DNA of 63,420 nt, counting the filler, from Octopus bimaculoides (lineage: Eukaryota): NCBI RefSeq assembly GCF_001194135.2. It is 5 parts of 5 records of this genome, joined end to end, with 100 filler letters (N's around TTAATTAATTAA, not from the genome) between each part and the next. Parts side by side here need not be neighbours in the genome. Positions count along the whole stretch, not along the records: positions 34,606 to 44,859 come from NW_026420234.1; 4 more parts are not named here. The stretch is one strand, 5' to 3'. Both the position numbers and the translations under genes were made by a program. Positions 24,731-44,959 of this stretch are shown one piece after another. A model generated the notes under the pieces. That model searched no databases. It had not been told where the DNA came from and was given only the letters and a program-made list of their open reading frames with translations. The stretch's first letter is position 1; the number at the start of each line of letters is the position of its first letter.

Positions 24731-26626
24731 TCAGTTCTAGCATTAGTAAGAAGAAGAGGGGGAGAAGGAGGGTGTGGAAAAGGAAAGGAAGCGGAGAAGG
24801 GAAGGAAGAAGAGGAGGAGAAGGAAGGAGGGGAGGAGAATGGGAGGAAAAGGAGGAGGAGAGAAGGAAAAGGGGGAACGAAAAGAGGAGGGAAATAACAG
24901 AGGAGGAGGAAAAGAAAGGAGGAGGAAGAGGAAGTAATGGAAGTCTGATTGCGCTCCGTTCATGTCTTTCTCAGAGACGCTAGAGAAGAATTTAAGTTAA
25001 AACCTTTAACTTGACCAGAATATCGAAACCTGGACTCGATCTGCTTAGAAATACAACAAGCACCCAATACATTGAGACTAATGTGGGCGAGTGACCCGTA
25101 TTTTAATAATAATAATAATGAAATAAATATCAGTAGGCTTGCCCCTAAACTACTTCCGGGCTTAGAACTTTCAAAAGGTAAAATGCAAGTCTAATAAGAC
25201 TGTTTCACAATTTCATCTTGATTGAATCTTTAATACTTTCTCGGTTCATATCACAAATAACTTTGTCTTGGTGTATAAACTGGTGTATAAATGCTGCCGA
25301 GCAAATGCTCAAGGCAAAAAATATTTCCACCATGTTCTATTGTGCGTAACATAATTTTCGTCTAATACTATTCGACCATTTTTGGCTAATATTATTTGTG
25401 AAACTATATGTTAGTTTCAAGAAGCAACCATAAGCTTACCAGCATGCGTTAGTAATAACTGTTAGGCAAACTTTTATGTACAGAACGATCTAATGTATGA
25501 GTGTGCGGGGATGGGGTAGGCGCAGAATGGCTGGATGGTTAAGAAATTCGCTTTCTACCCATGAAGGTCTTGGTTTAATCCTACCGTGTTATTGCGTGGG
25601 CAAGTGTCATTTTCTGTAGCTTCGATTTTCGATCCCACTAAGTTTGTGAGCGAAGTAGAGTAGAAGAAAAATGTGAACCAACCTGTTGGATGGATTGTAT
25701 CTGTTGTTCAAGAGTACCGTATTGTTATGTACCGTGACACGCTGATTCTATTAGAGACATCCGTTTATTAAACTAAAGATTTGGTTGTTTGATCAGCTGA
25801 ACAAGTTGTTCGGAAAATGAAAGTGGCCTAGCATTCCACAGACACGTGTATGTCTATGTAGACAGAAAGAGAGAGAGAGAAAAAGAGAGAGAAAGAAAGA
25901 GACAAACAGGCAAATAGATAGATAGATAGATAGGGATAGATAGGTAGATATAGGTAGATATAGATAGCTAGGTAGATATAGATAGCTAGGTAGATATAGA
26001 TAGCTAGGTAGATATAGATAGATAGGTAGATATATAGATAGATCGCACATAGTTTATGTGCGACCGATAACGTTTACATTATTAGAGCAGTATTTGTTCT
26101 GGCTCTTCACATTCCGGGTTCAAATCCCGACTTGGTTGTCTCTGCTTTTTATCCATTCGGATGTTCGGTATAATAAAATAAAGCGCCAGTCAAGTACCGG
26201 GATTGATAGCATCGACTAGCCTTACACTTAAATGTTGCTGACCTTGTGCCTAATTTAAGGACCGAATACGTAAATGCGTGCATGCGTGTGTGTATGTGTT
26301 TATGTGTACCCATTAAATACAAACACGTACATATACATAACACAAAGACAAGGAGCGGAAGAGAGGAAGAAAATCGTATATGGACGCTAGTTAAGTCGTC
26401 AGTATTAACGTATTTAATGCATTGAGCAGCTAAAAAGCTAATTAAAAAATTTATATATAGACAGTTTACTTGTATCTTTCTGTCTATATATTCTTTTCTC
26501 TCTCACATACACACTCACTCATACGCACACACACTTCTTTCACTGTTTCCCCCCCCCCACTACTCCCTACCTCTCTCTGTACACAAACACACAAACATCA
26601 TATATCACATGTATATACACAAAGAT

Positions 26627-26687
<61 letters not shown>

Positions 26688-27298
26688 CACACACACACAT
26701 ACACAAATACACTCATTCATATTTCTTCGTATTTCTGAAGAGCAGCGTATTGTTTGGCTGAAGTCAAGTGGAAAAAAAAAAGTAGAAAACCTTTATCAGT
26801 GGAGCGTAACGAATATATTTTGTCTGCCTTCCATTATAGATGCCTCTATCAGCACTTTATTATAAGTGTCAGCAATGATGCTGTACAGGGTGGCGGCGGC
26901 GATGATGATGATGATGATGTTGATGTTGAGGAGGAGGAGGTGCACGACGATGACGACGACGGCAGGAGCGTTGAACATTATGGTGGAGGTGGCGCTAGTG
27001 GTGGATGTTATGATTTTGATTGTAGTGACGGGAATGGCGTTGGTTGTGATGGCGGCTGCAGTGGTAAACGCGATGCTGTTGTTATAAAAGTGGATATGTA
27101 GTAGTAGTAGTAGTAGTAGTAGTAGCAGTAGTAAATAGGGAACAGACGAAGGCAATGGAAAAACCGGTGATACGATATAGAGTGGTTAGCAATTGTAGTG
27201 GTGTGATGAGTTGTGTTGTGTGGTGTGGTGTGGTGCAGTACGGCATAGTATGGGGTAATACGGAGTAGTATGCTGCGATACTGTGTGAGTGGAAAAGT

Positions 27299-27450
27299 GG
27301 GGCCTTGTGTCCATGGTGTTCGATTCGTGACGAAAAAGTTCTGAGTTCAATTCCTGGATCGAGTGAGTTATTGTTTCCTTGCGTAAGGTACTTCATATCA
27401 CGTTGTCCCAGTTTACTCAGCTGTAAATGAGTACCATCTGAGGGCCGATG
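27299..27450 (+). mobile_element. Old SINE with family C-like core
   Basis: 'gagttcaattcctgg...ttgtttccttgcgtaaggtacttc...ccagtttactcagctgtaaatgagtacc'. Confidence 0.6.
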
Positions 27451-27696
27451 CAGCTTTCTCTTCATCTGGTTGTCAGATTTTGGAAGTTCCGCTCATTTAG
27501 GAGTAGGAATGGAGTCGAGACAATGCCTGTGTCGGACGCAAGTGTGATGGTCTCCTTTGAAGATCGACTGCTTGGGGTTATTATTATCCTTTCTTCCCCA
27601 CCAAAATTAATCATCGGTTGTACGACCAATGAAATTGGAGTTTAATGCTTTAGTCTAACTGAAGGATACATAACCTGGGTTTTGTACACCGCGCTC

Positions 27697-27774
<78 letters not shown>

Positions 27775-29069
27775 TGGTGACCGATTCTGGAAACGAAGTC
27801 TGGTAAGTGAGGGGTTTGGTCTACAAGAGTAAGTGTATGTTACTCAAAATTGGTCTTGACAGAGCAATTCAGATCGAGCTGACCTGTAATCAAAGGAAGT
27901 CAAGTCTTGATCATCGTGCCCTTTTTGCCTTTAAAGTTCACCCAGTGCTCCTTATTCAAGAGAGTAAGGTCTTGTTTGAGGGAGACAATACTTTGCAGAC
28001 CTAGTGACCCCGTAAGAGATCTATTTCTTGCAATGATGTCGAAACTATAACACGGGTTACAAGTAATACCAACATGGATCTTCGGTCACAAGCATTAGGC
28101 TTTGAAAAAAAATTCCTACAGTATCATGTTATGATGGATGTTTACCCCAAATACGTTTTTATAGTAATGTATTATCTCTATTATAATGAAGAAAACTGTA
28201 TACTCAGTATAGAGTATGTAACTTTTATTAAAAGACAGCAATTATTAAGATCTGCACTGTCTAGAATACATATAATCGCTGGCTCGGGAACGAAATTTGT
28301 TAAGGGTGTGCTAACCTAGGTCTAAAATTCCTTTACAAACAAGGTCTTATTGCTTTTGTTAGTTATTTTTGTTCTTTGAGAAGAATCCAAACTTCAAGCT
28401 ACTTTTTGCAGATCCCTTTTTACAGTTTTCTGAGCCTGAGAAAAGTGAGTTTTTTTTTTGTGTTTTTTTCTCGCCCATTTCAAAGCCTAGCCAGCCTCAT
28501 GGGCCCGGTTTCCGGGTTTCAATGGCGTATGTGTATGTGTATGTGTATGTGTATGTGTGCTTGCGCTACTTGCACTCCGTGTTCCTGGACCCGCGCATAT
28601 AACGCGTGTTAAAACAATGTTTACATTTAACTAAAAAGACATGCATACATTTAAGTGACACTGTAATAACAGGATAACGAAAAAATATTGTAATTTCGAC
28701 ACGCAAACAAAATGTTCACAATTACAGTCGTTATTGTTTCAAACTGTTACTAAGCTGTCACTTCCTCCGACATATAACGTCATGTGACCGTCGTGTGTGA
28801 AGAGAAGGAGAGTTGTTGACGTTGCATATAGTCTTTTGAAAGATATTTCTTTTTTTTAGTTTACTTTATGTTGAATAACAAAGGTTTGCCTGTGTCTTGT
28901 CTTTTCCGTTTATTATCTTATTTCCTTATTTAATTGCTTAAAACTGATTTCGTTATTGTTTAGCTTCAAGTCAATAATCAAAGGAATTCAAATTTTACTG
29001 TTTCTCTCTATTTTTTCTTTTCCTTTCTTGGCATAGTATATCTTGAATGACATTATCCAATATGTACAA

Positions 29070-29810
29070 GACGGCGAGCTGGCAGAATCGTTAGCACGTC
29101 GGGCGAAATGCTTAGTGGTATTTCGTCTGTCTTCATGTTCTGAGTTCAAATGCCACTGGTGTCGACTTTGCCTGTCATCCTTTCGGGGTCGATAAATTAA
29201 GTACCAGTTACGTACTGGGATCGATCTAATCGACTTAATCCGAATGTTTTAAAGAAGAAATGCATCGTATTATATCGTATAGTACCAGTGAAACACTGGG
29301 GTCGATGTAATCAACTAGTCCCCTCCCCACCAAATTCAGGCCTTGTGCCTAATGTAGAAAGGATTATTATTATTAATATTATTGAAGGCGGCGAGCTGGC
29401 ATAATCGTTAGCATGCAGGGCGAAATGCTTAGCGACATTTCGTCCGTCCTTACGTTGAGTTCAAATTCCACCGAGGTCGACTTTGACTTTCATCCTTTCG
29501 GGGTCAAGAAAATAAGTACCAGTTGAGCAATGGGGTCGATACCCGTTCCCCAAAAATTTCAGGCTTTGTGCCTGAAGCATTATTATTATTATTATTAAGG
29601 CGGTGAGCTGGCAGAATCGTTAGCACGCCGGGAAAAATACTTAGCGACATTTCGCCCGTCTTTACGTTCTGAGTTCAAATCCCACCGAGGCCGACGTTGC
29701 TTTTCATCCTTTCGGAGTCGAGAAAGTAAATACAAGTTGAGCAATGAGGTTAATGTAATCGATTTACCCCTCCCCTTAAATTACTGGACTTGTGCCAAAA
29801 TTTGAAACCA
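29070..29810 (+). mobile_element. Head-to-tail cluster of SINE family A copies (~29070, 29283 partial, 29387, 29599)
   Basis: Three heads (g[a/g]cgg[c/t]gagctggca[g/t]aatcgttagca) separated by (ATT)n-like tails. Confidence 0.85.
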
Positions 29811-34505: not shown

Positions 34506-34861
34506 NNNNNNNNNNNNNNNNNNNNNNNNNNNNNNNNNNNNNNNNNNNNTTAATTAATTAANNNNNNNNNNNNNNNNNNNNNNNNNNNNNNNNNNNNNNN
34601 NNNNNTATATATATATATATATGCGCACACACACGCACACACACACATATATGTACACTCTTAAAATAAGTTCAATAAAATTGCTCTTACTCTGATAATA
34701 TCAAAAGAAATCAAACACAATTTATACGGTATAAAATATATCATGCATGCAAACATTATACAAATTTGGAACACAGATCTATTATCATTTTCAAAGATAT
34801 GAACAAAATATTTATTTTCTAATGATTCAAATGTATGTGCACTATAAAAGATTATTTGCTA

Positions 34862-35760
34862 TATTGAATGTTTGGTGTGACCGCTTTTGCTTTCAATGAC
34901 TGCATTTAGTTTTCTGGGCATAGAGTCTACTAAATTTCTGCATATAACCGATGAAATCGGCTTCCATTCATCCTGAATTATGTCTTTCAACTGTATTACA
35001 TCGCAGGGTTTTTTCTCCTCAACCTACCTTTTCAAATCACCCCACAGATGTTCTCTTGTGTTTAAATCAAGTGACAAGGTGGATAGCTTTAGTTTTTCTA
35101 TCTACTAAAGTCTTAGTTGTCATTTTTGAAGTTTGTTTCAGGTCATCATCATGTTGGAACATGGAATGTCTTCCTAGTTCCTTCATGCTTTTCAACATTG
35201 TTTTCTGCAATGTGTCATGATAAAGTCTTGAATCCATTGTTCTCTCAATAAATGTGAGTCCTCCCACACCAACCACATTCATGCATTCACAAAGCATAAC
35301 ACTTCCACCGCTGAATTTCGCGGTAGTCATGGTGCACTTGTCGCTTGTATCTTTACCTAGTCATCACCATACTCGTTTAATACCATCAAGTTGATTTTAG
35401 TCTTGTCAGAAAAAATAATTTTATTCTAAAACTCCTTCCCCTTACTCACATAGGTTTCGGCAAAAGAAAGATGACATGATTTATGCCTGGTAGTGAGGAG
35501 AGGCTTCCTATGAGGAATGCATCCATGAAGACCACACTATTTCAAAGTTCAGCAAACTGTTTGTGCGGATACGCTCTTTCCACAAACAGAAGACACTTCT
35601 TGGGCCAAAGATAAAGCAGTACAACACCTGTCGTCCTTCATGCAACATTAGATGTGGCGAATATCATGCACACTTAAAACAGTAGGACGACCTGGACAAT
35701 GTTTATTGCTTAGCCGTCCAGTAGCTTTGTACTTCTGAATTACTTTGGCAACTGTGTTTA
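34862..35760 (-). mobile_element. Tc1-family transposase pseudogene
   Basis: Minus-strand peptides GRPTVLSVHDIRH, SVSAQTV..LHGCIPHRKPLL, IIFSDKTKINL, AKFSGGSVML, MFQHDDDLKQTSK and PRKLNAVIESKSGHTK follow the Tc1 order, with stops and frameshifts. The element probably extends to ~34650-36050, but TIRs were not resolved. Confidence 0.9.
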
Positions 35761-37432
35761 CGCTAATATGTATTCATTTGATAATTAACTTGTATCCTAA
35801 ACCATTCTTGTGCAAATTAAGAATAATTTTCTTCAAATCTTCAGACAATTCTTTTCCTTTTGGTGCAATTTTAATGACAATGAAGAAGATTTTCACCATG
35901 GTACACAAATTAGAATTCCCGCAGATGCAATAACAATTATAGTGCAAAAATGCCAGGAGAAATAATTCATTAGAATTGAAATTATTAGCAATATCTGAAT
36001 TTTAAAAAAGTGGATAAAATATTGAATATAACAAATTTCCTTTTGGGTGTGCATATTTTAAAAATGTTTGAAAATTAATATTTCATTCATATTTTTAAAA
36101 TGTTTATTGTTTTATGTTCTAATTTGTATAATACAATATATCTTTTATATTTCTAATGACACATATTTTATAAATTTTTTATATTTTATATTTTTATACA
36201 TTTGCATATCCTTTCATATATTTTATTAGTGTTTATAAATTATAAATAATTTTGTGGACAATTTATAATGTTTTTTTTGTATAATTTAGTGGATATGGGA
36301 ATTTTTATTTTATTATACTTTTTGATCATGCAATATATTCATTAAGTATTTACATGCCCCAATTGATTCTAAGTATTGTATCTGAATGTATCCACTTATA
36401 TACATTTAGCATGCTTCTAATTCAATTACCCCATATATTGGATACCATTTTTTACAATATCCTATATTTATCCATCTGTAATGAAGAGAATAGTTCTTAC
36501 ATTAGTTTAAAATATACTATGAACTTCTATTCATATGATAATTTAATTCCGTTATACATTCACTATAGAATGTTTTTATAATGTATAGAAATACAGTGTT
36601 TAAGAAAAGTCTTATATTGATTTAAATTTTCTCACTTTAATATTATAAATTTGCTAAGTTATATTATACTACCTCCCTCATCCTTCAATTTTAAATTCCA
36701 CCCCTAACATTTATATTATCCCCATGGTTTTTCATTATATTATCCCTTTAATATGATAATCAAAATAAATATTGACCGTCCCTGTCCTTCTTTCTTCCAA
36801 TTATCACCCATTCTTCATCAGGCATTCCCTTACTACTCACACTATGCCCTACCCTTTTGTTTAGATAAAGCTAGGCATATGGTTCCTGTACAGTGAGAGT
36901 CTAGTAGATTGTCTGACATTAATTGATTCATTACCATTAACTAGAATACAGTTGACAAATCCCTATGGATTTGATTCTGAATGGTTGACACTACATTCTA
37001 CATAAAGGTCACCACTCTTTTTATCCTGACCCACACTATTTCTTCTGCTACTCTCTAAATTATAGTAGACTTAACGAGGTATGCACTATTTTCTAAACTC
37101 ATTCTGCCACAGATATGACAAAAGAAACAATGTAAATATTTTGAGTTCCATTATTGATGTGAATATGTTAAGGAAATGGTTGTATCCTTTATGTTTGAAG
37201 TTTATGCGGTCATCTGACAAGAATGGTTTCTTTCAAATGACAATGTTTCCTTTAATCAATTAAAGGAGTTGCTTGAAACGGCTGTAAGGAATTGACACTT
37301 ATACATCTTTGTTACTCATATTTTATAAATACACACACACACTCACAATGCAGAGACATAGATTCACATGCATACTTATACACTATTATCATCTAAATAT
37401 GAACACATATTAATGACACAAACATGAATACA

Positions 37433-37620
37433 TTCATCATCATCATCATCATCGTTTAACGTCCGCTTTCCATGCTAGCATGGGTTGGACGATTTGACTG
37501 AGGACTGGTGAAACCGGATGGCTACACCAGGCTCCAATCTAATTTGGCAGAGTTTCTACAGCTGGATGCCCTTCCTAACGCCAACCACTCAGAGAGTGTA
37601 GTGGGTGCTTTTACGATCTT
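37433..37620 (-). mobile_element. 3' end of an RTE-type LINE (non-autonomous tail) with (GAT)n tail
   Basis: (CAT)n followed by 'cgtttaacgtccgctttccatgctagcatgggttggacg...' matches copies at 38139, 42741 and 44528. The RTE assignment is inferred. Confidence 0.8.
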
Positions 37621-37779
37621 ACTTGGCTTGCCGGGTCTTCTCAATGCTCAAAACTCTGTAACCTGAAACAAGTAATTTCCATATTAATAATGGATGAAAT
37701 TTTGTTGAAGCAAATATGTTTCTTCCACTGAGTAGGTTATATAAGGGGAGGAAGGGGTATCAGTTACATCAGTACATGA

Positions 37780-38130
37780 CTGGTACGTCATTTTATCGGC
37801 CCCAAATGGATGAAAGACAAAGCCGACCTCAGTGGAATTTGAACTCAGAATGTAAAGAGCTGGAAGAAATGTCGCAAATAGTTCGGCCAGCTTACTACCT
37901 TTATAATATTTCTTTTTACTAATAGGCACAGGGCCTGCAATTTCGAAGGAAGGGGCTATTTGATTACATCGACAACCTCCCCAACCCCTGCTCAACTAGT
38001 GCTTATTTTATTGATCCCTGAAAGAATGAAAGGCAAAGTTGACTTTGGTGGGATTTGAATTAAGGATGTAACGAGCCAGAAGAATACCCCTAAGCACTTT
38101 GTCCAATCCATTAACAATTCTGCCAGCTCA
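37780..38130 (-). mobile_element. Two diverged SINE family A copies
   Basis: 'ggatgaaagacaaagccgacctcagtggaatttgaactcagaa' and 'gaatgaaaggcaaagttgactttggtgggatttgaa...ttctgccagctc' are reverse complements of family A. Confidence 0.75.
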
Positions 38131-38138
38131 TCATCGTT

Positions 38139-38428
38139 TGTTCATCGTTTAACGTCCGCCTTCCATGCTAGCATGGGTTGGACGATTTGACTGAGGACTG
38201 GTGAAACCGGATGGCAACACCAGGCTCCAATCTGATTTGGCAGAGTTTCTACAGCTGGATGCCCTTCCTAAACGCCAACCACTCAGAGAGTGTAGTGGGT
38301 GCTTTTACGTGCCACCCGCACGAAGGCCAGTCAGGCGGTACTGGCAACGGCCACGCTCAAAATGGTGTATTTTATGTGCAACCCGCACAAGAGCCAGTCC
38401 AGGGGCACTGGCAACGATCCAGGGGCCA
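38139..38428 (-). mobile_element. RTE-type LINE 3' tail, longer copy
   Basis: Same sequence as the 37433 copy, extended by 'gtgccacccgcacgaaggccagtcaggcggtactggcaacggccacgctc'. Confidence 0.8.
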
Positions 38429-38761
38429 TCATAATAATAATAATAATAATAACAATCTGGTTAGTGGTATCCAAAGAAGCGGAATGTCTTCATTTGTTTA
38501 GAGAAAAACAAAAATGTTGCACAAATCATCCAAACTATAACAAGTGACGCAAAAAAAAAAAGAAAACGAAAATACCTACATTAACTGTCATAAAACATGT
38601 TGACAAAGAGACTGATCAGACTCATTGAATTCATTGCCTGCTATTTTCATAGGTTATCTAACAAATGTTAGATTGCATTTCTACAATCTGTTTGACTTAC
38701 TGATAATGATAGTTTTGCTTTTTATTAATAACATTCAGTTGACATATTTTCTTCTTTCCAG

Positions 38762-40107
38762 AGAATGAAATTAAAGCAGTAAATAAATCCAGTATTGAAG
38801 AACTTAAGAAAGTTATATGTGAAGTTCTTGATGACAACAGAGGTAGAATAAAACGTGATCAGTTTTGGAATAAGGTGGCTGAGAAGCAAGGACATCATGT
38901 GAATCCCTCAGCCTATGGTTTCAGTAACTTGTATGAATTTCTGAAGCATTTCTCTGATGTTGTGGTAGAGGTGAGTGACAAGAATGAGTTATATATACAG
39001 AAGAAAACTTTGAGTGATTTCAATGAACCATCTATTGACAGAAACTCATCTTACTTAGGTGAGAACATATATCACTTTCCCTCACTTAATGAAACAATAA
39101 GAAGTAACCCATCAAAGCCATCTCTAGCAGAAGTTAGACACAGATTTTGTGACATTCTTATGAACTCTCCTCAGGGCATGCCACTACAGAAAATGGTGGA
39201 TAACTATAACAGAATATATCAAAAGACAACATTTAACTTGTTAGATTATAATGTCAGTAATTTTGAAGAACTTTTTAAGTTGCCTGAGTTTCGGTGTTTT
39301 AGTGTTTTAGTACAGAACAATATGATAATGATTTATTTGAAAGAACACAATACTCCCAGCCATAACATATATTATCCCACCATAGTTAATCAAATGCCAG
39401 TTCTTAAATGGGGTGATCCAGCATTTTCCACCATGCAACAACAGCCACATGTTACTGATAGTTTCCACCTCACACCTTTCTCGAAACTCCCCCCACCGAA
39501 AATGAATGAAAAAGAAATTTTAGTACCACCTTTAAGTATTGCCCCTGGAGAGACTCTATCTAAAGAACGTCTTGACAAAATAGCCAAAGAATGTATTGAA
39601 ATACTTTCTGACAATAATGAATGTGTGTCTATTCAAACCATTGAAAATCTTTTCCTTCAACGCCTTAGAAGAAAAAACTTACGAGAACTCGGTATTCGTA
39701 GTTTAGATCATTTGCCGTCAGTTCATGATCATAATCGTTTGGCCTGTAAAGTTAATGCTTATATTCAAGCCTTTGTGACAGTTCGGTCTGTCTGTACACT
39801 GAAAGAACTGGAAGACTGTATTGCACTTTATGTTAATGAAGGCAGTTCTTTTCAAAGCCTCAAACTTGGACCTTTACATAAGATGCAAATTGTTTTTGAT
39901 TTATTTAAATTTCCTCCTGGTGAAGAAAGTTTCCCAGAACTCTCTACAATGGATGTTTTAGATAATATAAGAAATTTTCTTAATGAGAATAATTGGTATA
40001 AAAAACATGAAATGCATGAAGTTATGTCTTTTTTGACGAAGGCTTTTCACTGTAGAGATCCATTTCACCTTGGAATTCGCTTGCGGAGCCTTCCACTTGC
40101 TATTGGG
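38762..40107 (+). CDS. Internal coding exon of a NO VEIN-like protein with two N-terminal LOTUS (OST-HTH)-like domains
   Basis: Acceptor ttttcttctttccAG at 38761 (phase 1), a stop-free frame of ~448 codons, and donor GGG|GTAAGG at 40108. LOTUS-like 1: IEELKKVICEVLDDNRGRIKRDQFWNKVAEKQGHHVNPSAYGFSNLYEFLKHFSDVV. LOTUS-like 2: LAEVRHRFCDILMNSPQGMPLQKMVDNYNRIY..NLLDYNVSNFEELFK. The C-terminal block KVNAYIQAFV..VCTLKELE..SFQSLKLGPL..LGIRLRSL resembles, from recall, Arabidopsis NO VEIN KINAFIHCFV..IVTLHDLE..SFDDLELGPL..LGVRIQSL. Confidence 0.9.
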
Positions 40108-41119
40108 GTAAGGATATATTTGTTTATTTAAATTTTGGAATTGTTTATCCTTTTCTTATTTCAAGAAATTAATGACTTGCAAATAGTTTCATATTAATTG
40201 ATAACACAATTATGTGACAATATTGATTTTGCTTTATTTCCTTTATTTTTGATTATTTTTTTTTTATCTCTTGTTTTCTTTCAAGCATAGGCAAGGGTTT
40301 TATTTTTTAAAATTTAGGTATTTATGTTGTTGAAAAATTGTTTTCATAACTAATTGCTCTCTTAGCCCTCTTAACACTGCTTTTGTTTCAATTAATTTTG
40401 AAACTAATGAAGAATTTAGTAAATAATTATGTCTTTATTAAGCTGGCATTTGGAATAGCAATTAACATGAAATTTTATTCAAAGGTTTAAATTTAGATCA
40501 TTTTAGATCATGAACCCAGTGTGTTTCAGGCAGGTTGGTATCAAAAGGATTAGAACTGATTTCTCAACTGTGAGATGAAGATAGTTCATGTCAGCTAGAC
40601 AGACTAAGGTTAGCAGTATGTTGCGTCTTGTGTAAGAGGCCTTCAACACAATGGCTATAGTCAGGCTTGAATTCATATCTACATAGCAGTTGTTTTTGCT
40701 GAAAATTATGCTTAATAAGTTAAATAAAGTAAAAAATATATTTAGTGCTTTTGATGGCAAGTTGGCAGTAGCCAGCCAAAAATTTTATCAGTGAATGTTA
40801 CCAACCCAGCCAGAAATTGCTAAAATAGCCTAGTCATATTTAAAGGAGAATTTCAGTGCAAATCTCTTTTTGTCCTGTTTTGATCTTTTTGAAATGTTTC
40901 ACTATGGACAAAAATTGGAAACCAGTTTATGTTGCCAAGCAGTGAATTTGAAAGAAGAAAAATCTGAGAAAATTTATGGCAAGCATAAACACTTCATGTG
41001 TGATTATGAATTGGATATATCTTTTTCCAAAAGTAAAACAATTTTGTCAACAGTTCCATTAGCAATATAAAAAAATAATGAATTTGCACTTGAATCATCA
41101 TTATCCTTATCATCATCAT

Positions 41120-41335
41120 CATCACCACCATCATCATCATCATTAACATCCATTTTCCATACTTCCATGGGTTGGACAGTTTGACAGGAGCTGGTAAGGC
41201 CAGGGGCAGTATCAGGCTCCATTGTCTGTTCTGGCATGGTTTCTACAACTGAATGCTCTCTTCCTAAAACCAACCACTTTACAGAGTGTACTGGGTGTTT
41301 TTTATGCAGCATCAGAACCAGTGCATTTTACATAT
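41120..41335 (-). mobile_element. Older, diverged relative of the RTE-type tail
   Basis: (CAT)n followed by 'attaacatccattttccatacttccatgggttggac...ctctcttcctaaaaccaaccactttacagagtgtactgggtg'. Confidence 0.65.
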
Positions 41336-41629
41336 GCTTGGAAGAAAGTTAGGAATGTGAGCATTTTTAGGAATATTGTGTGTGTGTGTGTGTGTGTCTC
41401 TGTGTGTGTGTGTGTGTGTGTCTGTGTGTGTCTGTGTGTAAATCTGATTTAGAAATATGTTTTTCAAATTTACCTTGTTTTTATTTTTTATTTACCTGTA
41501 AGATGCCATATAAATTTTGATTTGTATTGTGAATCTATGTATGCATGTGAATTGATTTCATTTAGTTGATGGCACATTTCATAGTTTTCTTCAAAAGCAA
41601 ATTCCAATAGTTCATTCTGCATTAAGTTT

Positions 41630-42525
41630 GACCATTTTAGGTCCCTTGAAGGCCTTGGTAATCCTTACCCTCTGCTCATCCGTCATATTGCAGCTGGATT
41701 TGTTGGTCTCTTGTTCCACCATGCCTCACACAAAGAAGTCGAGTGTGTTGCAGTCAGGCAAGTTGGGAAACCAAATGTCAGGTGTTGTGTGATCAAAGAA
41801 ATTCTCTGATTGCCAGGCCTGGGTCTTCCGGCTGGTGTGGCAGCGGTAGAGTCTTGCAGCTACCTGGTTGATCTAGGGCTTCACCACCTTGCACAGAACA
41901 CAGATGTAGTTGTTGTTGTTCGGCTTGAGTCTATCAGAGAAGATGTAGGTTGGTATGATCTCACTGTCACTGCTGACAACACCAGAGACGCTGGAAATTA
42001 TGTCTGCATGATTCTGGGCATGTCCTTGGGTGAAACAACGAGCCACCTGTTGTTCTGGGAGTTTGATCTTCTGATTTTGGCAGAAATTCTTCTTGTCAGA
42101 GAAGGACCACATCATCTCTGGCTCTAGCAGGTGTTACAACTTGTTGCTCAGCTCTTGGTGTGCTTGAATCACTTTTCCTGCATTGCCTTGGACAGAAATT
42201 TTCCTTTTACCTTGTTTGAAAGGATGCGAATGTTTTCCAGCCTAATGAGCTTTTCATCCACACCTTTCTCCCTTGCAATGGCATGCATCAGCTTACTTGA
42301 TGATCTGGATTTTAGTGATGAATTCTGGCATTCTGATGGTGCCAGATTGTCGATCATGGGTTTTCCTCTCTGTTGTTGCCTTATAGTTGAATCCTGAATC
42401 TCCCAGCCCTGTTCTGATCTTTTCCACCATACTTCTGCTGATGTTGAGAAGGTCTGAAATTTCTTTGTTTCTTGTTTGTCCTTTCAGTGCAAATTCCAAG
42501 GAGGATTCCATGCCTCTCCCACAAG
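41630..42525 (-). mobile_element. DD37D (maT-type) Tc1/mariner transposase pseudogene
   Basis: Peptides EISDLLNISRSMV (HTH), AIAREKGVDEKLIR, WSFSDKKNFCQNQK and QDS..CHTSRKTQAW..IWFPNLPDCNTLDFFV. There are 37 residues between the second and third Asp once one 1-nt frameshift is allowed. Confidence 0.8.
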
Positions 42526-42709
42526 GAGTGAGCGAATCAAAATTTTCTATAGTCAGTTATTCTGCAAAAAAATAAAGTAAAGATGATTACTGTTTTTAAG
42601 AAGAAAAAGATCGACAATGAAAAAAAAAAAGCATAAAATTAGCAGTTGAAAATTGCAAACAAGTACCATCTGCACCCTGTATATGGTTACTGATGCATTT
42701 GTACATTGA

Positions 42710-42740
<31 letters not shown>

Positions 42741-42902
42741 GAGTGGTTGGCGTTAGGAAGGGCATCCAGCTGTAGAAACTCTGCCAAATCAGATTGGAGC
42801 CTGGTGTAGCCATCCGGTTTCACCAGTCCTCAGTCAAATCGTCCAACCCATGCTAGCATGGAAAGCGGACGTTAAACGATGATGATGATGATGATGATGA
42901 TG
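42741..42902 (+). mobile_element. RTE-type LINE 3' tail with (GAT)n, inverted relative to the 37433 and 38139 copies
   Basis: 42741-42878 is the reverse complement of 37453-37590 with one mismatch by eye. Confidence 0.85.
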
Positions 42903-43625
42903 ATATATATATATANNNNNNNNNNNNNNNNNNNNNNNNNNNNNNNNNNNNNNNNNNNNNNNNNNNNNNNNNNNNNNNNNNNNNNNNNNNNNNNNNNNNN
43001 NNNNNNNNNNNNNNNNNNNNNNNNNNNNNNNNNNNNNNNNNNNNNNNNNNNNNNNNNNNNNNNNNNNNNNNNNNNNNNNNNNNNNNNNNNNNNNNNNNNN
43101 NNNNNNNNNNNNNNNNNNNNNNNNNNNNNNNNNNNNNNNNNNNNNNNNNNNNNNNNNNNNNNNNNNNNNNNNNNNNNNNNNNNNNNNNNNNNNNNNNNNN
43201 NNNNNNNNNNNNNNNNNNNNNNNNNNNNNNNNNNNNNNNNNNNNNNNNNNNNNNNNNNNNNNNNNNNNNNNNNNNNNNNNNNNNNNNNNNNNNNNNNNNN
43301 NNNNNNNNNNNNNNNNNNNNNNNNNNNNNNNNNNNNNNNNNNNNNNNNNNNNNNNNNNNNNNNNNNNNNNNNNNNNNNNNNNNNNNNNNNNNNNNNNNNN
43401 NNNNNNNNNNNNNNNNNNNNNNNNNNNNNNNNNNNNNNNNNNNNNNNNNNNNNNNNNNNNNNNNNNNNNNNNNNNNNNNNNNNNNNNNNNNNNNNNNNNN
43501 NNNNNNNNNNNNNNNNNNNNNNNNNNNNNNNNNNNNNNNNNNNNNNNNNNNNNNNNNNNNNNNNNNNNNNNNNNNNNNNNNNNNNNNNNNNNNNNNNNNN
43601 NNNNNNNNNNNNNNNNNNNNNNNNN

Positions 43626-44520
43626 GCGACAGGTTGCCCCTGGAAACCTCCCTATGCTGATGACTATGATCTCATAGCGAAATCAGTACCGGGACTAGAG
43701 ATGAAATTTGAGATGTGGAAGCAAGGTTTAGACTCAAAGGGCCTAAGAGTCAATGTTGCAAAAACCAAAGTCCTAGTAAGTAGGAAGGCGAACACATCAC
43801 AAACCCCTTCAGGCTGATGGCCCTGCTCGATTTGTAGAAAAGATGTAGGTAGAATCTCCTTAAGATGTACCCAGTGTAAGCTATGAACACAGGTGCAGCA
43901 ACATCAAGGGAGGGTTAACCAGGAAGATAGCTTTCGTGTGCAGCAGATGCACAGGGGCAATAAACACCACAGATGCTCAGAAAACTGATTTCATCTCATG
44001 CCAGGGGTAGTAAGGGTGGATGCTTAGAGAGTGTTACCATTAGAATAAGAATAGCCTGGGCAAAGTTCAGAAAGCTCTTACCTCTACTGGTGACAAAGGC
44101 CTCTCGCTCAGAGTGAAAGGTAGATTGTACGATGCATATGTGCGAACTGCCATGCTACACAGCAGTGAAACAAGGACAGTGACTGCTGACAGCATGCATA
44201 GGCTTGAAAGAAATGAAGCTAGTATGATCTGCTGGATGTGTAATGGCAGTGTGCACACACGACAGAGTGTAAGCGCCCTGAGAGAAATGTTGGACATAAG
44301 AAGATCAGATGTGGTGTGCAAGAGAGATGGCTGAGATGAGGAGAAAGACCGAGATCTCTGGAGATATGCTGTGATTGAGAAGACCAGGCAAGTAAAGTGA
44401 GATCACAGCCATAGCCTACACCAGTGTCACATAACCCATTTAAAAAGTACCTTTGAATCGTTGGGCGACATGCCTTGCTTGAGGAAACCTATTGAGTCAA
44501 GTAAAATCAAAATCAAATGA
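43626..44520 (+). mobile_element. RTE-clade LINE fragment (RT C-terminal half, Cys-rich insert, C-terminus), degraded
   Basis: PYADDYDLIA (YADD motif), KQGLDSKGLRVNVAKTKVLV, WPCSICRK, KGRLYDAYVRTAMLHSSET and DRDLWRYAV. The 5' part is lost in the gap. Confidence 0.9.
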
Positions 44521-44527
44521 AATCACA

Positions 44528-44830
44528 TCATCATCATCATCATCATCATTTAGCGTCCGCTTTCCATGCTAGCATGGGTTGGACGATTTGACTGAGGACT
44601 GGTGAAACCGGATGGCAACACCAGGCTCCAATCCAATTTGGCAGAGTTTCTACAGCTGGATGCTCTTCCTAACGCCAACCACTCAGAGAGTGTAGTGGGT
44701 GCTTTTACGTGTCACCCGCACGAAAACGGCCACGCTCGAAATGGTGTCTTTTATGTGCCACCCGCACAAGAGCCAGTCCAGGGGCACTGGCAACGATCTC
44801 GCTCAAAAACCCTACAAAGGCCAGTCAGGC
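44528..44830 (-). mobile_element. RTE-type LINE 3' tail copy
   Basis: (CAT)n followed by 'ttagcgtccgctttccatgctagcatgggttggacg...'; same family as the 38139 copy. Confidence 0.8.
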
Positions 44831-44959
44831 GGTATATATATATATATATATATATATATNNNNNNNNNNNNNNNNNNNNNNNNNNNNNNNNNNNNNNNNN
44901 NNNTTAATTAATTAANNNNNNNNNNNNNNNNNNNNNNNNNNNNNNNNNNNNNNNNNNNN

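Follow-up and report, generated by a model that had tools for sequence, protein, structure and literature searches.

The exon and its protein product

The stretch of Octopus bimaculoides DNA analysed here (hereafter the window; 63,420 nucleotides, filler included) contains, on the plus strand at positions 38762–40107, an internal coding exon of 1346 nt that carries the front end of a protein of the NO VEIN (NOV) family. The exon encodes two LOTUS-type (OST-HTH) domains, a disordered, proline-rich linker and the conserved N-terminal block of NOV proteins (NOV-N), and the complete protein has a length of ∼2,900 residues. This layout on a single exon had been proposed in an earlier note on the same DNA and was borne out by the open frame, the splice sites, hidden Markov models (HMMs) and an AlphaFold model. 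As judged from homologue alignments, the exon belongs to a cephalopod orthologue or close paralogue of the metazoan NOV family. The genomic piece examined around it spans positions 34606–44859 (∼10 kb), where the DNA has a G+C content of 33–36%.

With both strands considered, the piece contains a single long open frame, which runs from a TGA stop at 38740–38742 to a stop within the following intron at 40129–40131. The TGA closes the reading frame upstream of the 3′ splice site (plus strand, 38745–38761). This site, read directly from the DNA, consists of a polypyrimidine tract and an AG acceptor at 38760–38761 (tattttcttctttccAG, ending in ttccAG). The exon starts in phase 1, with two bases that finish a split codon followed by 448 codons, and ends in phase 0. 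The 5′ splice site, also read directly, is GTAAGG (plus strand, 40108–40113), preceded by GGG across the boundary at 40107/40108; gene callers that ignore this donor run on to the stop at 40129–40131. A matching acceptor context, and read-through past the donor, are found in a Logan contig from a related animal (L004), whose protein is 85% identical. Protein P0001 is likewise 85% identical to the exon product, and the best homologue of the product was matched with an E-value of 2e-209. In the gene models of Tegillarca and Argonauta, the coding block ends at the residue matching the exon end, and both proteins go on with V(I/L)K(R/K)AQRD, which is encoded by the next exon.

Compared with L004, the closest relative, the ratio of nonsynonymous to synonymous substitution rates (dN/dS, Nei–Gojobori method) is 0.40 for the exon, 0.30 for the NOV-N block and 0.60, the highest value, for the linker. 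The exon is under purifying selection, with dN/dS lowest in the most conserved domain. Since 448 codons are open in DNA of 33–36% G+C, homologues are found with E-values down to 2e-209 and dN/dS is 0.40, positions 38762–40107 cannot be a chance open reading frame (ORF).

Searches with tblastn, using all homologues including the full-length Argonauta NOV-like protein, detected no exon other than 38762–40107 within the piece. The upstream LOTUS exon and the downstream exon (KRAQRD...) would lie either outside the piece or inside an assembly gap. This gap of ∼690 N, at about 42930–43620, is located 2.8 kb downstream of the exon, and the next exon could lie within or beyond it. Introns of at least 3 kb are the norm in homologous loci: the next exon in contig L002 is ∼2.9 kb downstream, and the Tegillarca gene spans 19 kb.

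The matches of two word-indexed protein searches were exclusively N-terminal fragments that stop where this exon stops, such as Tegillarca granosa KUTeg_019576; such fragments arise when prokaryote-style gene callers continue into the intron. On T. granosa CM056603.1 (positions 26340–29235), KUTeg_019576 (721 residues) stops soon after the homologous exon and is followed by an adjacent gene of 235 residues. As ORFs that continue the NOV sequence lie just downstream, KUTeg_019576 and its neighbour look like a split model of one long NOV gene.

Two LOTUS-type domains

An AlphaFold2 model of the whole exon product, calculated from a 29-row alignment, has a mean predicted local distance difference test score (pLDDT) of 76 and consists of three folded units set between disordered segments: residues 6–82 (pLDDT 84–96), residues 115–192 (77–88) and residues 255–448 (∼90). 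The first unit is a LOTUS/OST-HTH domain (LOTUS1; residues 7–82, plus strand, 38782–39009), a winged helix-turn-helix with a β-hairpin wing, as identified by Pfam (PF12872), AlphaFold and Foldseek. Its score exceeds the PF12872 gathering threshold of 23.8 bits both in the context of the whole exon (31.4 bits, residues 13–75) and as an isolated segment (26.7 bits), in which residues 12–75 are aligned to positions 7–68 of the 71 profile positions. The assignment of 38794–39000 to LOTUS, made beforehand by eye, is thereby confirmed. The order of secondary structure elements in the model, α1-β1-α2-α3-α4-β2-β3, is that of LOTUS domains, including the β-hairpin wing.

A Foldseek search with the whole-exon model retrieved TDRD5 (PDB 3s93) with a TM-score of 0.82–0.83 and a root-mean-square deviation (rmsd) of 2.0 Å over 80 columns, as well as TDRD7 (3rco and 2lh9), Tejas (8wxs) and MARF1 (5yad), all with an rmsd of 2–3 Å. 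The E-values of these LOTUS matches are only 0.05–0.35, and the output is silent on which part of the query was aligned; the modest values are due to the placement of a ∼75-residue domain within a multi-domain query of 448 residues. Generic winged helices that bind DNA (STIV F93, Cdt1 and TFIIIC) score similarly to LOTUS. Searches of the PDB sequences with phmmer, using either the whole exon or LOTUS1, gave only chance-level matches (angiopoietin-related protein, caltractin and CKAP5; E 0.14–2).

The second unit (LOTUS2; residues 117–194, plus strand, 39112–39345) is more divergent; its helical core is preserved and its wing is uncertain. We call it a divergent LOTUS domain, on the basis of profile comparisons and the predicted structure. 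A LOTUS HMM built iteratively from the first segment scores LOTUS2 at 48 bits (E 1e-14), and phmmer matches it with the third of the LOTUS domains in a shark homologue. A profile made of four sequences, LOTUS2 and its three closest relatives, matches only two of 177,635 PDB sequences, namely TDRD7 (2ly1, E 0.08) and MARF1 (5yad, E 0.24). The earlier reading of 39121–39345 as LOTUS finds no backing in Pfam, but is favoured by the family HMM, the TDRD7 and MARF1 profile matches, the shark alignment and a pLDDT of 77–88.

No conserved, helix-forming C-terminal extension is seen after either domain in the Argonauta alignment and the AlphaFold model. The residues that follow LOTUS1 (83–114) have a pLDDT below 50, and Argonauta lacks 17 of them; those that follow LOTUS2 are proline-rich and disordered. 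The binding of Vasa by LOTUS domains requires such a conserved extension, which forms helix α5 on Vasa (PMC5458760). According to PMC7498356, LOTUS domains bind G-rich and G-quadruplex (G4) RNA across phyla, which is reported there as an ancestral property.

The NOV-N block

The third unit, the NOV-N block (residues 255–448, plus strand, 39526–40107), is an all-helical domain conserved at the N-terminus of the NOV family, as indicated by homology, profile searches and AlphaFold. BLASTP aligns it with residues 11–193 of a lycophyte NOV (P0158) at 31% identity over 190 residues (E 2e-19). The lycophyte protein also contains SACS and NOV_C domains. The identification of 39550–40107 as the N-terminus of NO VEIN is upheld. 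An exhaustive HMM search of representative proteins, with a 10-sequence alignment as query, detected 440 proteins at E ≤ 0.001, 70 of them below 1e-30; they come from plants and animals, with taxa taken from the 150 matches listed of the 440. Many matches are 2,000–3,300 residues long and have the block near their N-terminus, and in all full-length proteins scanned with Pfam, NOV-N precedes SACS and NOV_C. The NOV-N alignment spans plants, Hydra, fishes and molluscs, with LGPL and LG[IV]RI.S as the most conserved motifs.

When modelled alone, the block reaches a pLDDT of 91.7 and a predicted TM-score (pTM) of 0.83. No Pfam family matched NOV-N, and a Foldseek comparison of the model with the PDB identified no structural neighbour (best E 1, TM-score at most 0.27). 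The first module of the block (39556–39741, residues 265–326) is weakly LOTUS-like, with a family HMM score of 30 bits that is seen in cephalopods only. A comparison of NOV-N with LOTUS by hhalign gives P 0.0013 (0.0036 without cephalopods), against a best value of 0.011 in 30 column shuffles, at a probability of just 19%. The block also contains a weak internal repeat (P about 0.001). These similarities are suggestive, and only suggestive, of an origin of NOV-N as a degenerate tandem of helix-turn-helix modules derived from LOTUS.

The linker and short conserved motifs

LOTUS2 and NOV-N are connected by a disordered linker rich in proline and glutamine (residues 195–254, plus strand, 39346–39525), which has a pLDDT of 34–48; of its 60 residues, 9 are Pro and 4 are Gln. 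Within the linker, LKWGDPAF (plus strand, 39403–39426) represents a conserved WG motif, recognised by its enrichment relative to shuffled sequences. The pattern x-W-G-x-[GPE]-[AV] is present in 24 of 127 N-terminal regions, compared to 0.25 expected (maximum of 3 in 200 shuffles). It is always located upstream of the NOV-N block, and occurs in cephalopod, bivalve and gastropod homologues. The motif resembles the Argonaute-binding GW/WG hooks; GW/WG motifs can dock Argonaute/PIWI proteins.

A second short motif, [DE][FW]PxL, appears repeatedly in disordered N-terminal regions across animal NOV homologues, those of Hydra, Owenia, fishes and molluscs among them. It was found in 40 of the 127 N-terminal regions (1.7 expected, maximum of 6 in 200 shuffles), and the looser form [FW]PxL in 57 (15.9 expected, maximum of 25). 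The copy in the window, FPSL (plus strand, 39076–39087), lies in a stretch with a pLDDT below 50. It reads HFPSL, with a histidine where Asp or Glu stands before the phenylalanine, and so fits only [FW]PxL. A literature search on FPxL peptide strings returned only irrelevant matches.

Full-length relatives and distribution of the layout

The closest full-length relative is the 'protein NO VEIN-like' of Argonauta hians (GAB1610178.1, P0057), which consists of 2870 residues. In a tblastn alignment, its residues 92–506 match 38791–40110 with 57% identity (E 8e-152). An additional LOTUS domain is made up of residues 1–85 of the Argonauta protein; the octopus gene, too, therefore probably encodes a third one, on an upstream exon outside the piece. 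Pfam identifies a Sacsin-type GHKL domain (PF25794) and NOV_C (PF13020) in every full-length homologue scanned, with scores in the Argonauta protein of 52.3 bits (residues 1208–1315) and 64.1 bits, respectively. The GHKL/sacsin-like ATPase and the DUF3883 domain named in the earlier note are thus seen in the orthologues, with their catalytic-looking motifs intact. Full-length homologues with NOV-N are 2,500–3,300 residues long. In the databases, they are named 'protein NO VEIN-like' (Argonauta hians, Anneissia japonica and Protopterus), 'protein NO VEIN' (Hydra), 'wu:fj29h11' (Lepisosteus and Heptranchias) or 'Protein NO VEIN C-terminal domain-containing protein' (Mizuhopecten, Owenia, Mytilus and Dendrobium), and the proteins of Potamilus, Tegillarca and Denticeps bear the automatic UniProt name 'HTH OST-type domain-containing protein'.

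LOTUS domains are common at the N-termini of these proteins. Pfam OST-HTH scores 40 bits in Argonauta, 65 bits in gar (two domains), 119.5 bits in Heptranchias (four domains), 26 bits in Denticeps and 35.5 bits in the pipefish Stigmatopora, and it is the sole recurrent Pfam family among 63 N-terminal fragments, 17 of which contain it. With the family HMM, at least one LOTUS domain was detected upstream of NOV-N in 78 of the 106 proteins that have at least 120 residues there. The combination of LOTUS and NOV occurs in molluscs (Haliotis, Mizuhopecten, Potamilus and Sinanodonta), the crinoid Anneissia, the hemichordate Saccoglossus, a shark, and ray-finned fishes such as Erpetoichthys, a bichir relative. 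The number of LOTUS domains per protein is one in Denticeps and Anneissia, two in bivalves, Haliotis and gar, three in Argonauta, Saccoglossus and Erpetoichthys, and four in the shark. Neither Pfam nor the family HMM detected LOTUS in the homologues from Hydra, plants, the annelid Owenia or the acanthocephalan Pomphorhynchus. Unless it was gained twice, the layout would be at least as old as the last common ancestor of protostomes and deuterostomes.

The fusion of LOTUS with NO VEIN had been put forward as novel in the earlier note, a claim that survives only with respect to the literature. The layout is present in 78 of 106 informative homologues and is annotated automatically; its annotation across most metazoan homologues, named in advance as an outcome that would lower the novelty, was largely found. 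In the searchable literature, no paper was found that joins 'NO VEIN' with 'LOTUS domain' or 'LOTUS domain' with 'sacsin', 'OST-HTH' and 'DUF3883' appear together only in an unrelated co-mention, and the text of the founding 2010 OST-HTH paper contains no ATPase architecture. The layout is therefore already in the databases and is not special to this genome, but is new to the literature searched. A 2025 paper describes the metazoan NOV homologues as uncharacterised (PMC12690905).

The ATPase-nuclease core and its relation to TmtA

Fifteen full-length homologues, ranging from plants to cephalopods, share invariant motifs of the kind expected of an ATPase and a nuclease. The Bergerat-fold motifs are E[LV][IV]QNADD, DVGxST and GYIGxKGIGFKSVF, and the nucleotide pocket that ELIQNADD and GYIGxKGIGFKSVF mark in the sacsin/Hsp90-type GHKL ATPase is intact; the NOV_C motifs are GxxGE, WxN, P[YF]D and EVK, in a PD-(D/E)xK-like arrangement. 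DUF3883 has been described as a novel domain with a restriction-endonuclease fold (PMC3710099).

A PADLOC scan of the Argonauta protein matched residues 1165–2862 (∼1,700 residues) to positions 5–1291 of the 1302 positions of the TmtA model PDLC03972 (E 4.7e-137). The gar (E 1.5e-143) and Hydra (E 2.6e-114) proteins match PDLC03972 likewise, and the lycophyte NOV spans a second TmtA model, PDLC03966, from end to end (E 2.1e-116). In the orthologues, these profile alignments establish the NOV core, from GHKL to NOV_C, as an end-to-end homologue of TmtA. This homology of the ATPase-nuclease core had not been part of the earlier note. The exon product itself matched no PADLOC model, those of TmtA included. 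The exon looks like part of a eukaryotic N-terminal addition of ∼1,100 residues (LOTUS, NOV-N and more) placed before a TmtA-like core.

We take TmtA to be the protein that alone makes up Tiamat, a bacterial anti-phage system. Millman et al., in 2022, reportedly validated Tiamat as a defence system; the text of their preprint does not contain that name. DefenseFinder matches to Tiamat__TmtA in Arabidopsis and in Octopus bimaculoides (KOF75943.1) are given in the supplement of Cury et al. (bioRxiv 10.1101/2022.12.12.520048), the main text of which is silent on them.

Repeats around the exon

Five copies of a SINE-like (short interspersed element-like) repeat, some of them partial, are distributed over the piece in both orientations with 75–99% identity: 37434–37615, 38127–38420, 41143–41185, 42740–42899 (minus strand) and 44526–44800. 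One copy ends ∼340 bp upstream of the acceptor. A scan of the piece against Rfam detected no RNA family, and there was no match to tRNA, 5S or 7SL RNA. Just past the run of N, two short ORFs on the plus strand (43620–43817 and 44113–44334) show similarity to the C-terminal part of a reverse transcriptase (RVT_1, E 0.014, which misses the Pfam cut-off) and are probably a truncated fragment of a retrotransposon lacking long terminal repeats (non-LTR). An ORF of 87 residues on the minus strand (35067–35330) resembles by eye the C-terminal part of a Tc1/mariner-type transposase (...FQHDDD.K.TSK...), with no significant match in Pfam.

Functional implications

The best explanation of these observations, which we put forward with moderate confidence, is that the exon encodes the front end of a NOV-family protein in which LOTUS domains tether a TmtA-like ATPase-nuclease to RNA or ribonucleoprotein (RNP) particles, as a form of nucleic-acid surveillance. 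The LOTUS domains would act as minimal-type modules that bring the enzyme to RNA or RNP, with G-rich or G-quadruplex RNA as the ancestral ligand. ATP binding and hydrolysis by the GHKL domain would gate a conformational switch or dimerisation, and NOV_C would cleave nucleic acid. Such a surveillance ATPase-nuclease may have descended from a prokaryotic defence ancestor, the RNA/RNP-targeting LOTUS domains having been gained in animals. Tethering to RNA or RNP is favoured here because RNA binding is ancestral to LOTUS domains, and because the binding of Vasa needs an extension of which none is seen to be conserved in this protein. A role in the germline or in RNA silencing, as envisaged in the earlier note, is plausible.

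Several points weigh against tethering and surveillance. No NOV protein is known to us to have RNA-binding, ATPase or nuclease activity. The ATPase and nuclease parts are known from orthologues and, in this genome, lie outside 34606–44859; at 57% identity to the Argonauta protein, the gene could be a paralogue and not an orthologue. The LOTUS2 segment alone remains below the Pfam threshold, and its helical core is modelled with a pLDDT of 77–88 but its wing comes out as a helix. The extension of extended-type LOTUS domains is disordered in the free Oskar domain too, so that its absence from our model is weak evidence (PMC5458760). Finally, the passage of PMC12289216 that cites Tsugeki 2009 describes plant NOV as a nuclear factor of development on which cell-fate decisions depend, a role that does not in itself suggest RNA surveillance.

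The nuclear location and cell-fate role reported in that passage (PMC12289216) are also what would be expected if the protein were a chromatin- or DNA-directed regulator in the nucleus, like plant NOV or the MORC-type GHKL ATPases, with LOTUS and NOV-N serving as generic winged-helix adaptors for DNA or protein. NOV-N is common to plants, whose proteins lack LOTUS, and the core function therefore does not need LOTUS. The DNA-binding winged helices STIV F93, Cdt1 and TFIIIC score like LOTUS in Foldseek, and the bacterial relatives presumably act on phage DNA. At the sequence level, however, the matches are specifically to LOTUS and not to other winged-helix families, and in the one systematic study (PMC7498356) LOTUS domains favoured G4 structures of RNA over those of DNA and showed no binding to double-stranded RNA. 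A nuclear regulator of this kind, though a serious alternative, appears doubtful.

Another alternative is a germ-granule scaffold, where extended-type LOTUS domains would recruit and stimulate Vasa/DDX4 and the ATPase-nuclease would operate in the nuage for transposon control guided by PIWI-interacting RNA. In its favour, it is mainly in proteins of the germline, such as Oskar, TDRD5/7, Tejas and MARF1, that LOTUS domains are found otherwise. Against it, no conserved helix-forming extension is seen after either LOTUS domain, and Vasa binding needs one. The conserved WG motif in the linker resembles the GW/WG motifs that can dock Argonaute/PIWI proteins, but a single WG is a weak Argonaute hook. 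The ancestry of the core among defence proteins would fit a role in genome defence. In an acanthocephalan, a NOV/wu:fj29h11 homologue is female-biased and scales with worm size (PMC12690905); this bias is not creditable to LOTUS, because the full-length Pomphorhynchus homologue has no detectable LOTUS domain. We consider a germ-granule scaffold unlikely.

A bolder extension of the surveillance model, which is quite improbable as a whole, would make LOTUS-NOV an ancient bilaterian effector with a Tiamat-derived core aimed by LOTUS at RNA or RNP targets, in which the WG motif docks Argonaute/PIWI and [DE][FW]PxL docks a partner. It would serve germline or antiviral defence and may have been lost in some lineages, with NOV-N itself a degenerate LOTUS-like tandem. 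If NOV-N were such a tandem, plant NOV too would carry a cryptic targeting domain of the LOTUS type.

That the exon is instead a non-functional remnant, pseudogenised or captured by a transposon and outside any expressed NOV gene, is hardly credible: it sits among SINE-like repeats and transposon fragments, has no neighbouring exon in the 10 kb piece and has a dN/dS (0.40) that is not very low, but its frame runs for 448 codons without a stop in AT-rich DNA, the acceptor and the donor are intact, with the downstream boundary common to other molluscs, dN/dS stays far under 1 and reaches its minimum in the best conserved domain, and introns of at least 3 kb are normal in homologous loci (∼2.9 kb in L002, a gene of 19 kb in Tegillarca).

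To our knowledge, NOV is known from one Arabidopsis developmental mutant. Animal NOV proteins usually carry LOTUS, a module that elsewhere characterises RNA regulators of germ granules and oocytes, and the enzymatic core of NOV is a whole-length homologue of a bacterial protein that we assume, from its attribution to Tiamat, to be anti-phage, with ATPase and nuclease motifs intact from plants to cephalopods. An ATPase-nuclease targeted to RNA or RNP is a concrete, testable hypothesis for this giant orphan protein, and would mean a further instance in which eukaryotes have kept a prokaryotic defence protein. The zebrafish orthologue, wu:fj29h11, makes genetic testing possible. The window itself contributes one more member, from a cephalopod, of a layout that was already in the databases but had gone unremarked.

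Comparison with known systems

The ATPase of the orthologues matches Pfam Sacsin and the NCBIfam entry 'sacsin N-terminal ATP-binding-like', as in sacsin and MORC-type GHKL ATPases. Each NOV homologue has one ATPase module, compared to the three repeats of sacsin. Orthology with sacsin was rejected, as each full-length homologue gives a single SACS match and Pfam finds no DnaJ, HEPN or ubiquitin-like domain. The S5 and CW domains of MORC were not detected in the NOV orthologues.

The LOTUS fold is shared with TDRD5, TDRD7/Tapas, Tejas and Oskar (Foldseek TM-scores of 0.72–0.83 and an rmsd of 2–3 Å to 3s93, 3rco and 8wxs). In contrast, Tudor or OSK domains are present in these proteins, and their LOTUS domains have a conserved C-terminal helix through which Vasa is bound. 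MARF1 is nearer in organisation, since its one polypeptide chain holds a nuclease along with several LOTUS domains of the minimal type, and its structure 5yad is matched by both the LOTUS2 profile and Foldseek. However, the nuclease of MARF1 is a NYN/PIN-like RNase and not of the restriction-endonuclease fold, an RRM is present, a GHKL ATPase is absent, and homology is limited to LOTUS. With its LOTUS repeats and NYN RNase, MARF1 may be regarded as the nearest functional analogue. Membership of the exon in the TDRD, Oskar or MARF1 families was rejected, as Pfam finds only OST-HTH, SACS and NOV_C, and no Tudor, OSK, NYN or RRM domain, in the exon product and in P0057, P0038, P0044 and P0045.

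TmtA (PADLOC PDLC03972) corresponds to the enzymatic part of NOV: the core of the orthologues, from GHKL to NOV_C, matches the whole profile with E-values of 1e-114 to 1e-143, whereas the models do not match the exon and leave the N-terminal ∼1,100 residues of NOV uncovered. Arabidopsis NO VEIN (NOV, At4g13750) and other plant NOV proteins have the NOV-N block in common with the exon, and the orthologues share with them the sacsin-type GHKL domain and NOV_C, with identical catalytic-looking motifs. Unlike the octopus protein, they begin directly with NOV-N and have no LOTUS domain, and the only role described for them is auxin-related patterning. The closest correspondence is with the metazoan NO VEIN-like/wu:fj29h11 proteins (Argonauta GAB1610178.1, Mizuhopecten XP_021342125.1, Lepisosteus W5MY83 and Heptranchias XP_067859939.1), which have the same layout of LOTUS, NOV-N, GHKL and NOV_C; among them the number of LOTUS domains varies, and the LOTUS2 of the window is unusually divergent.

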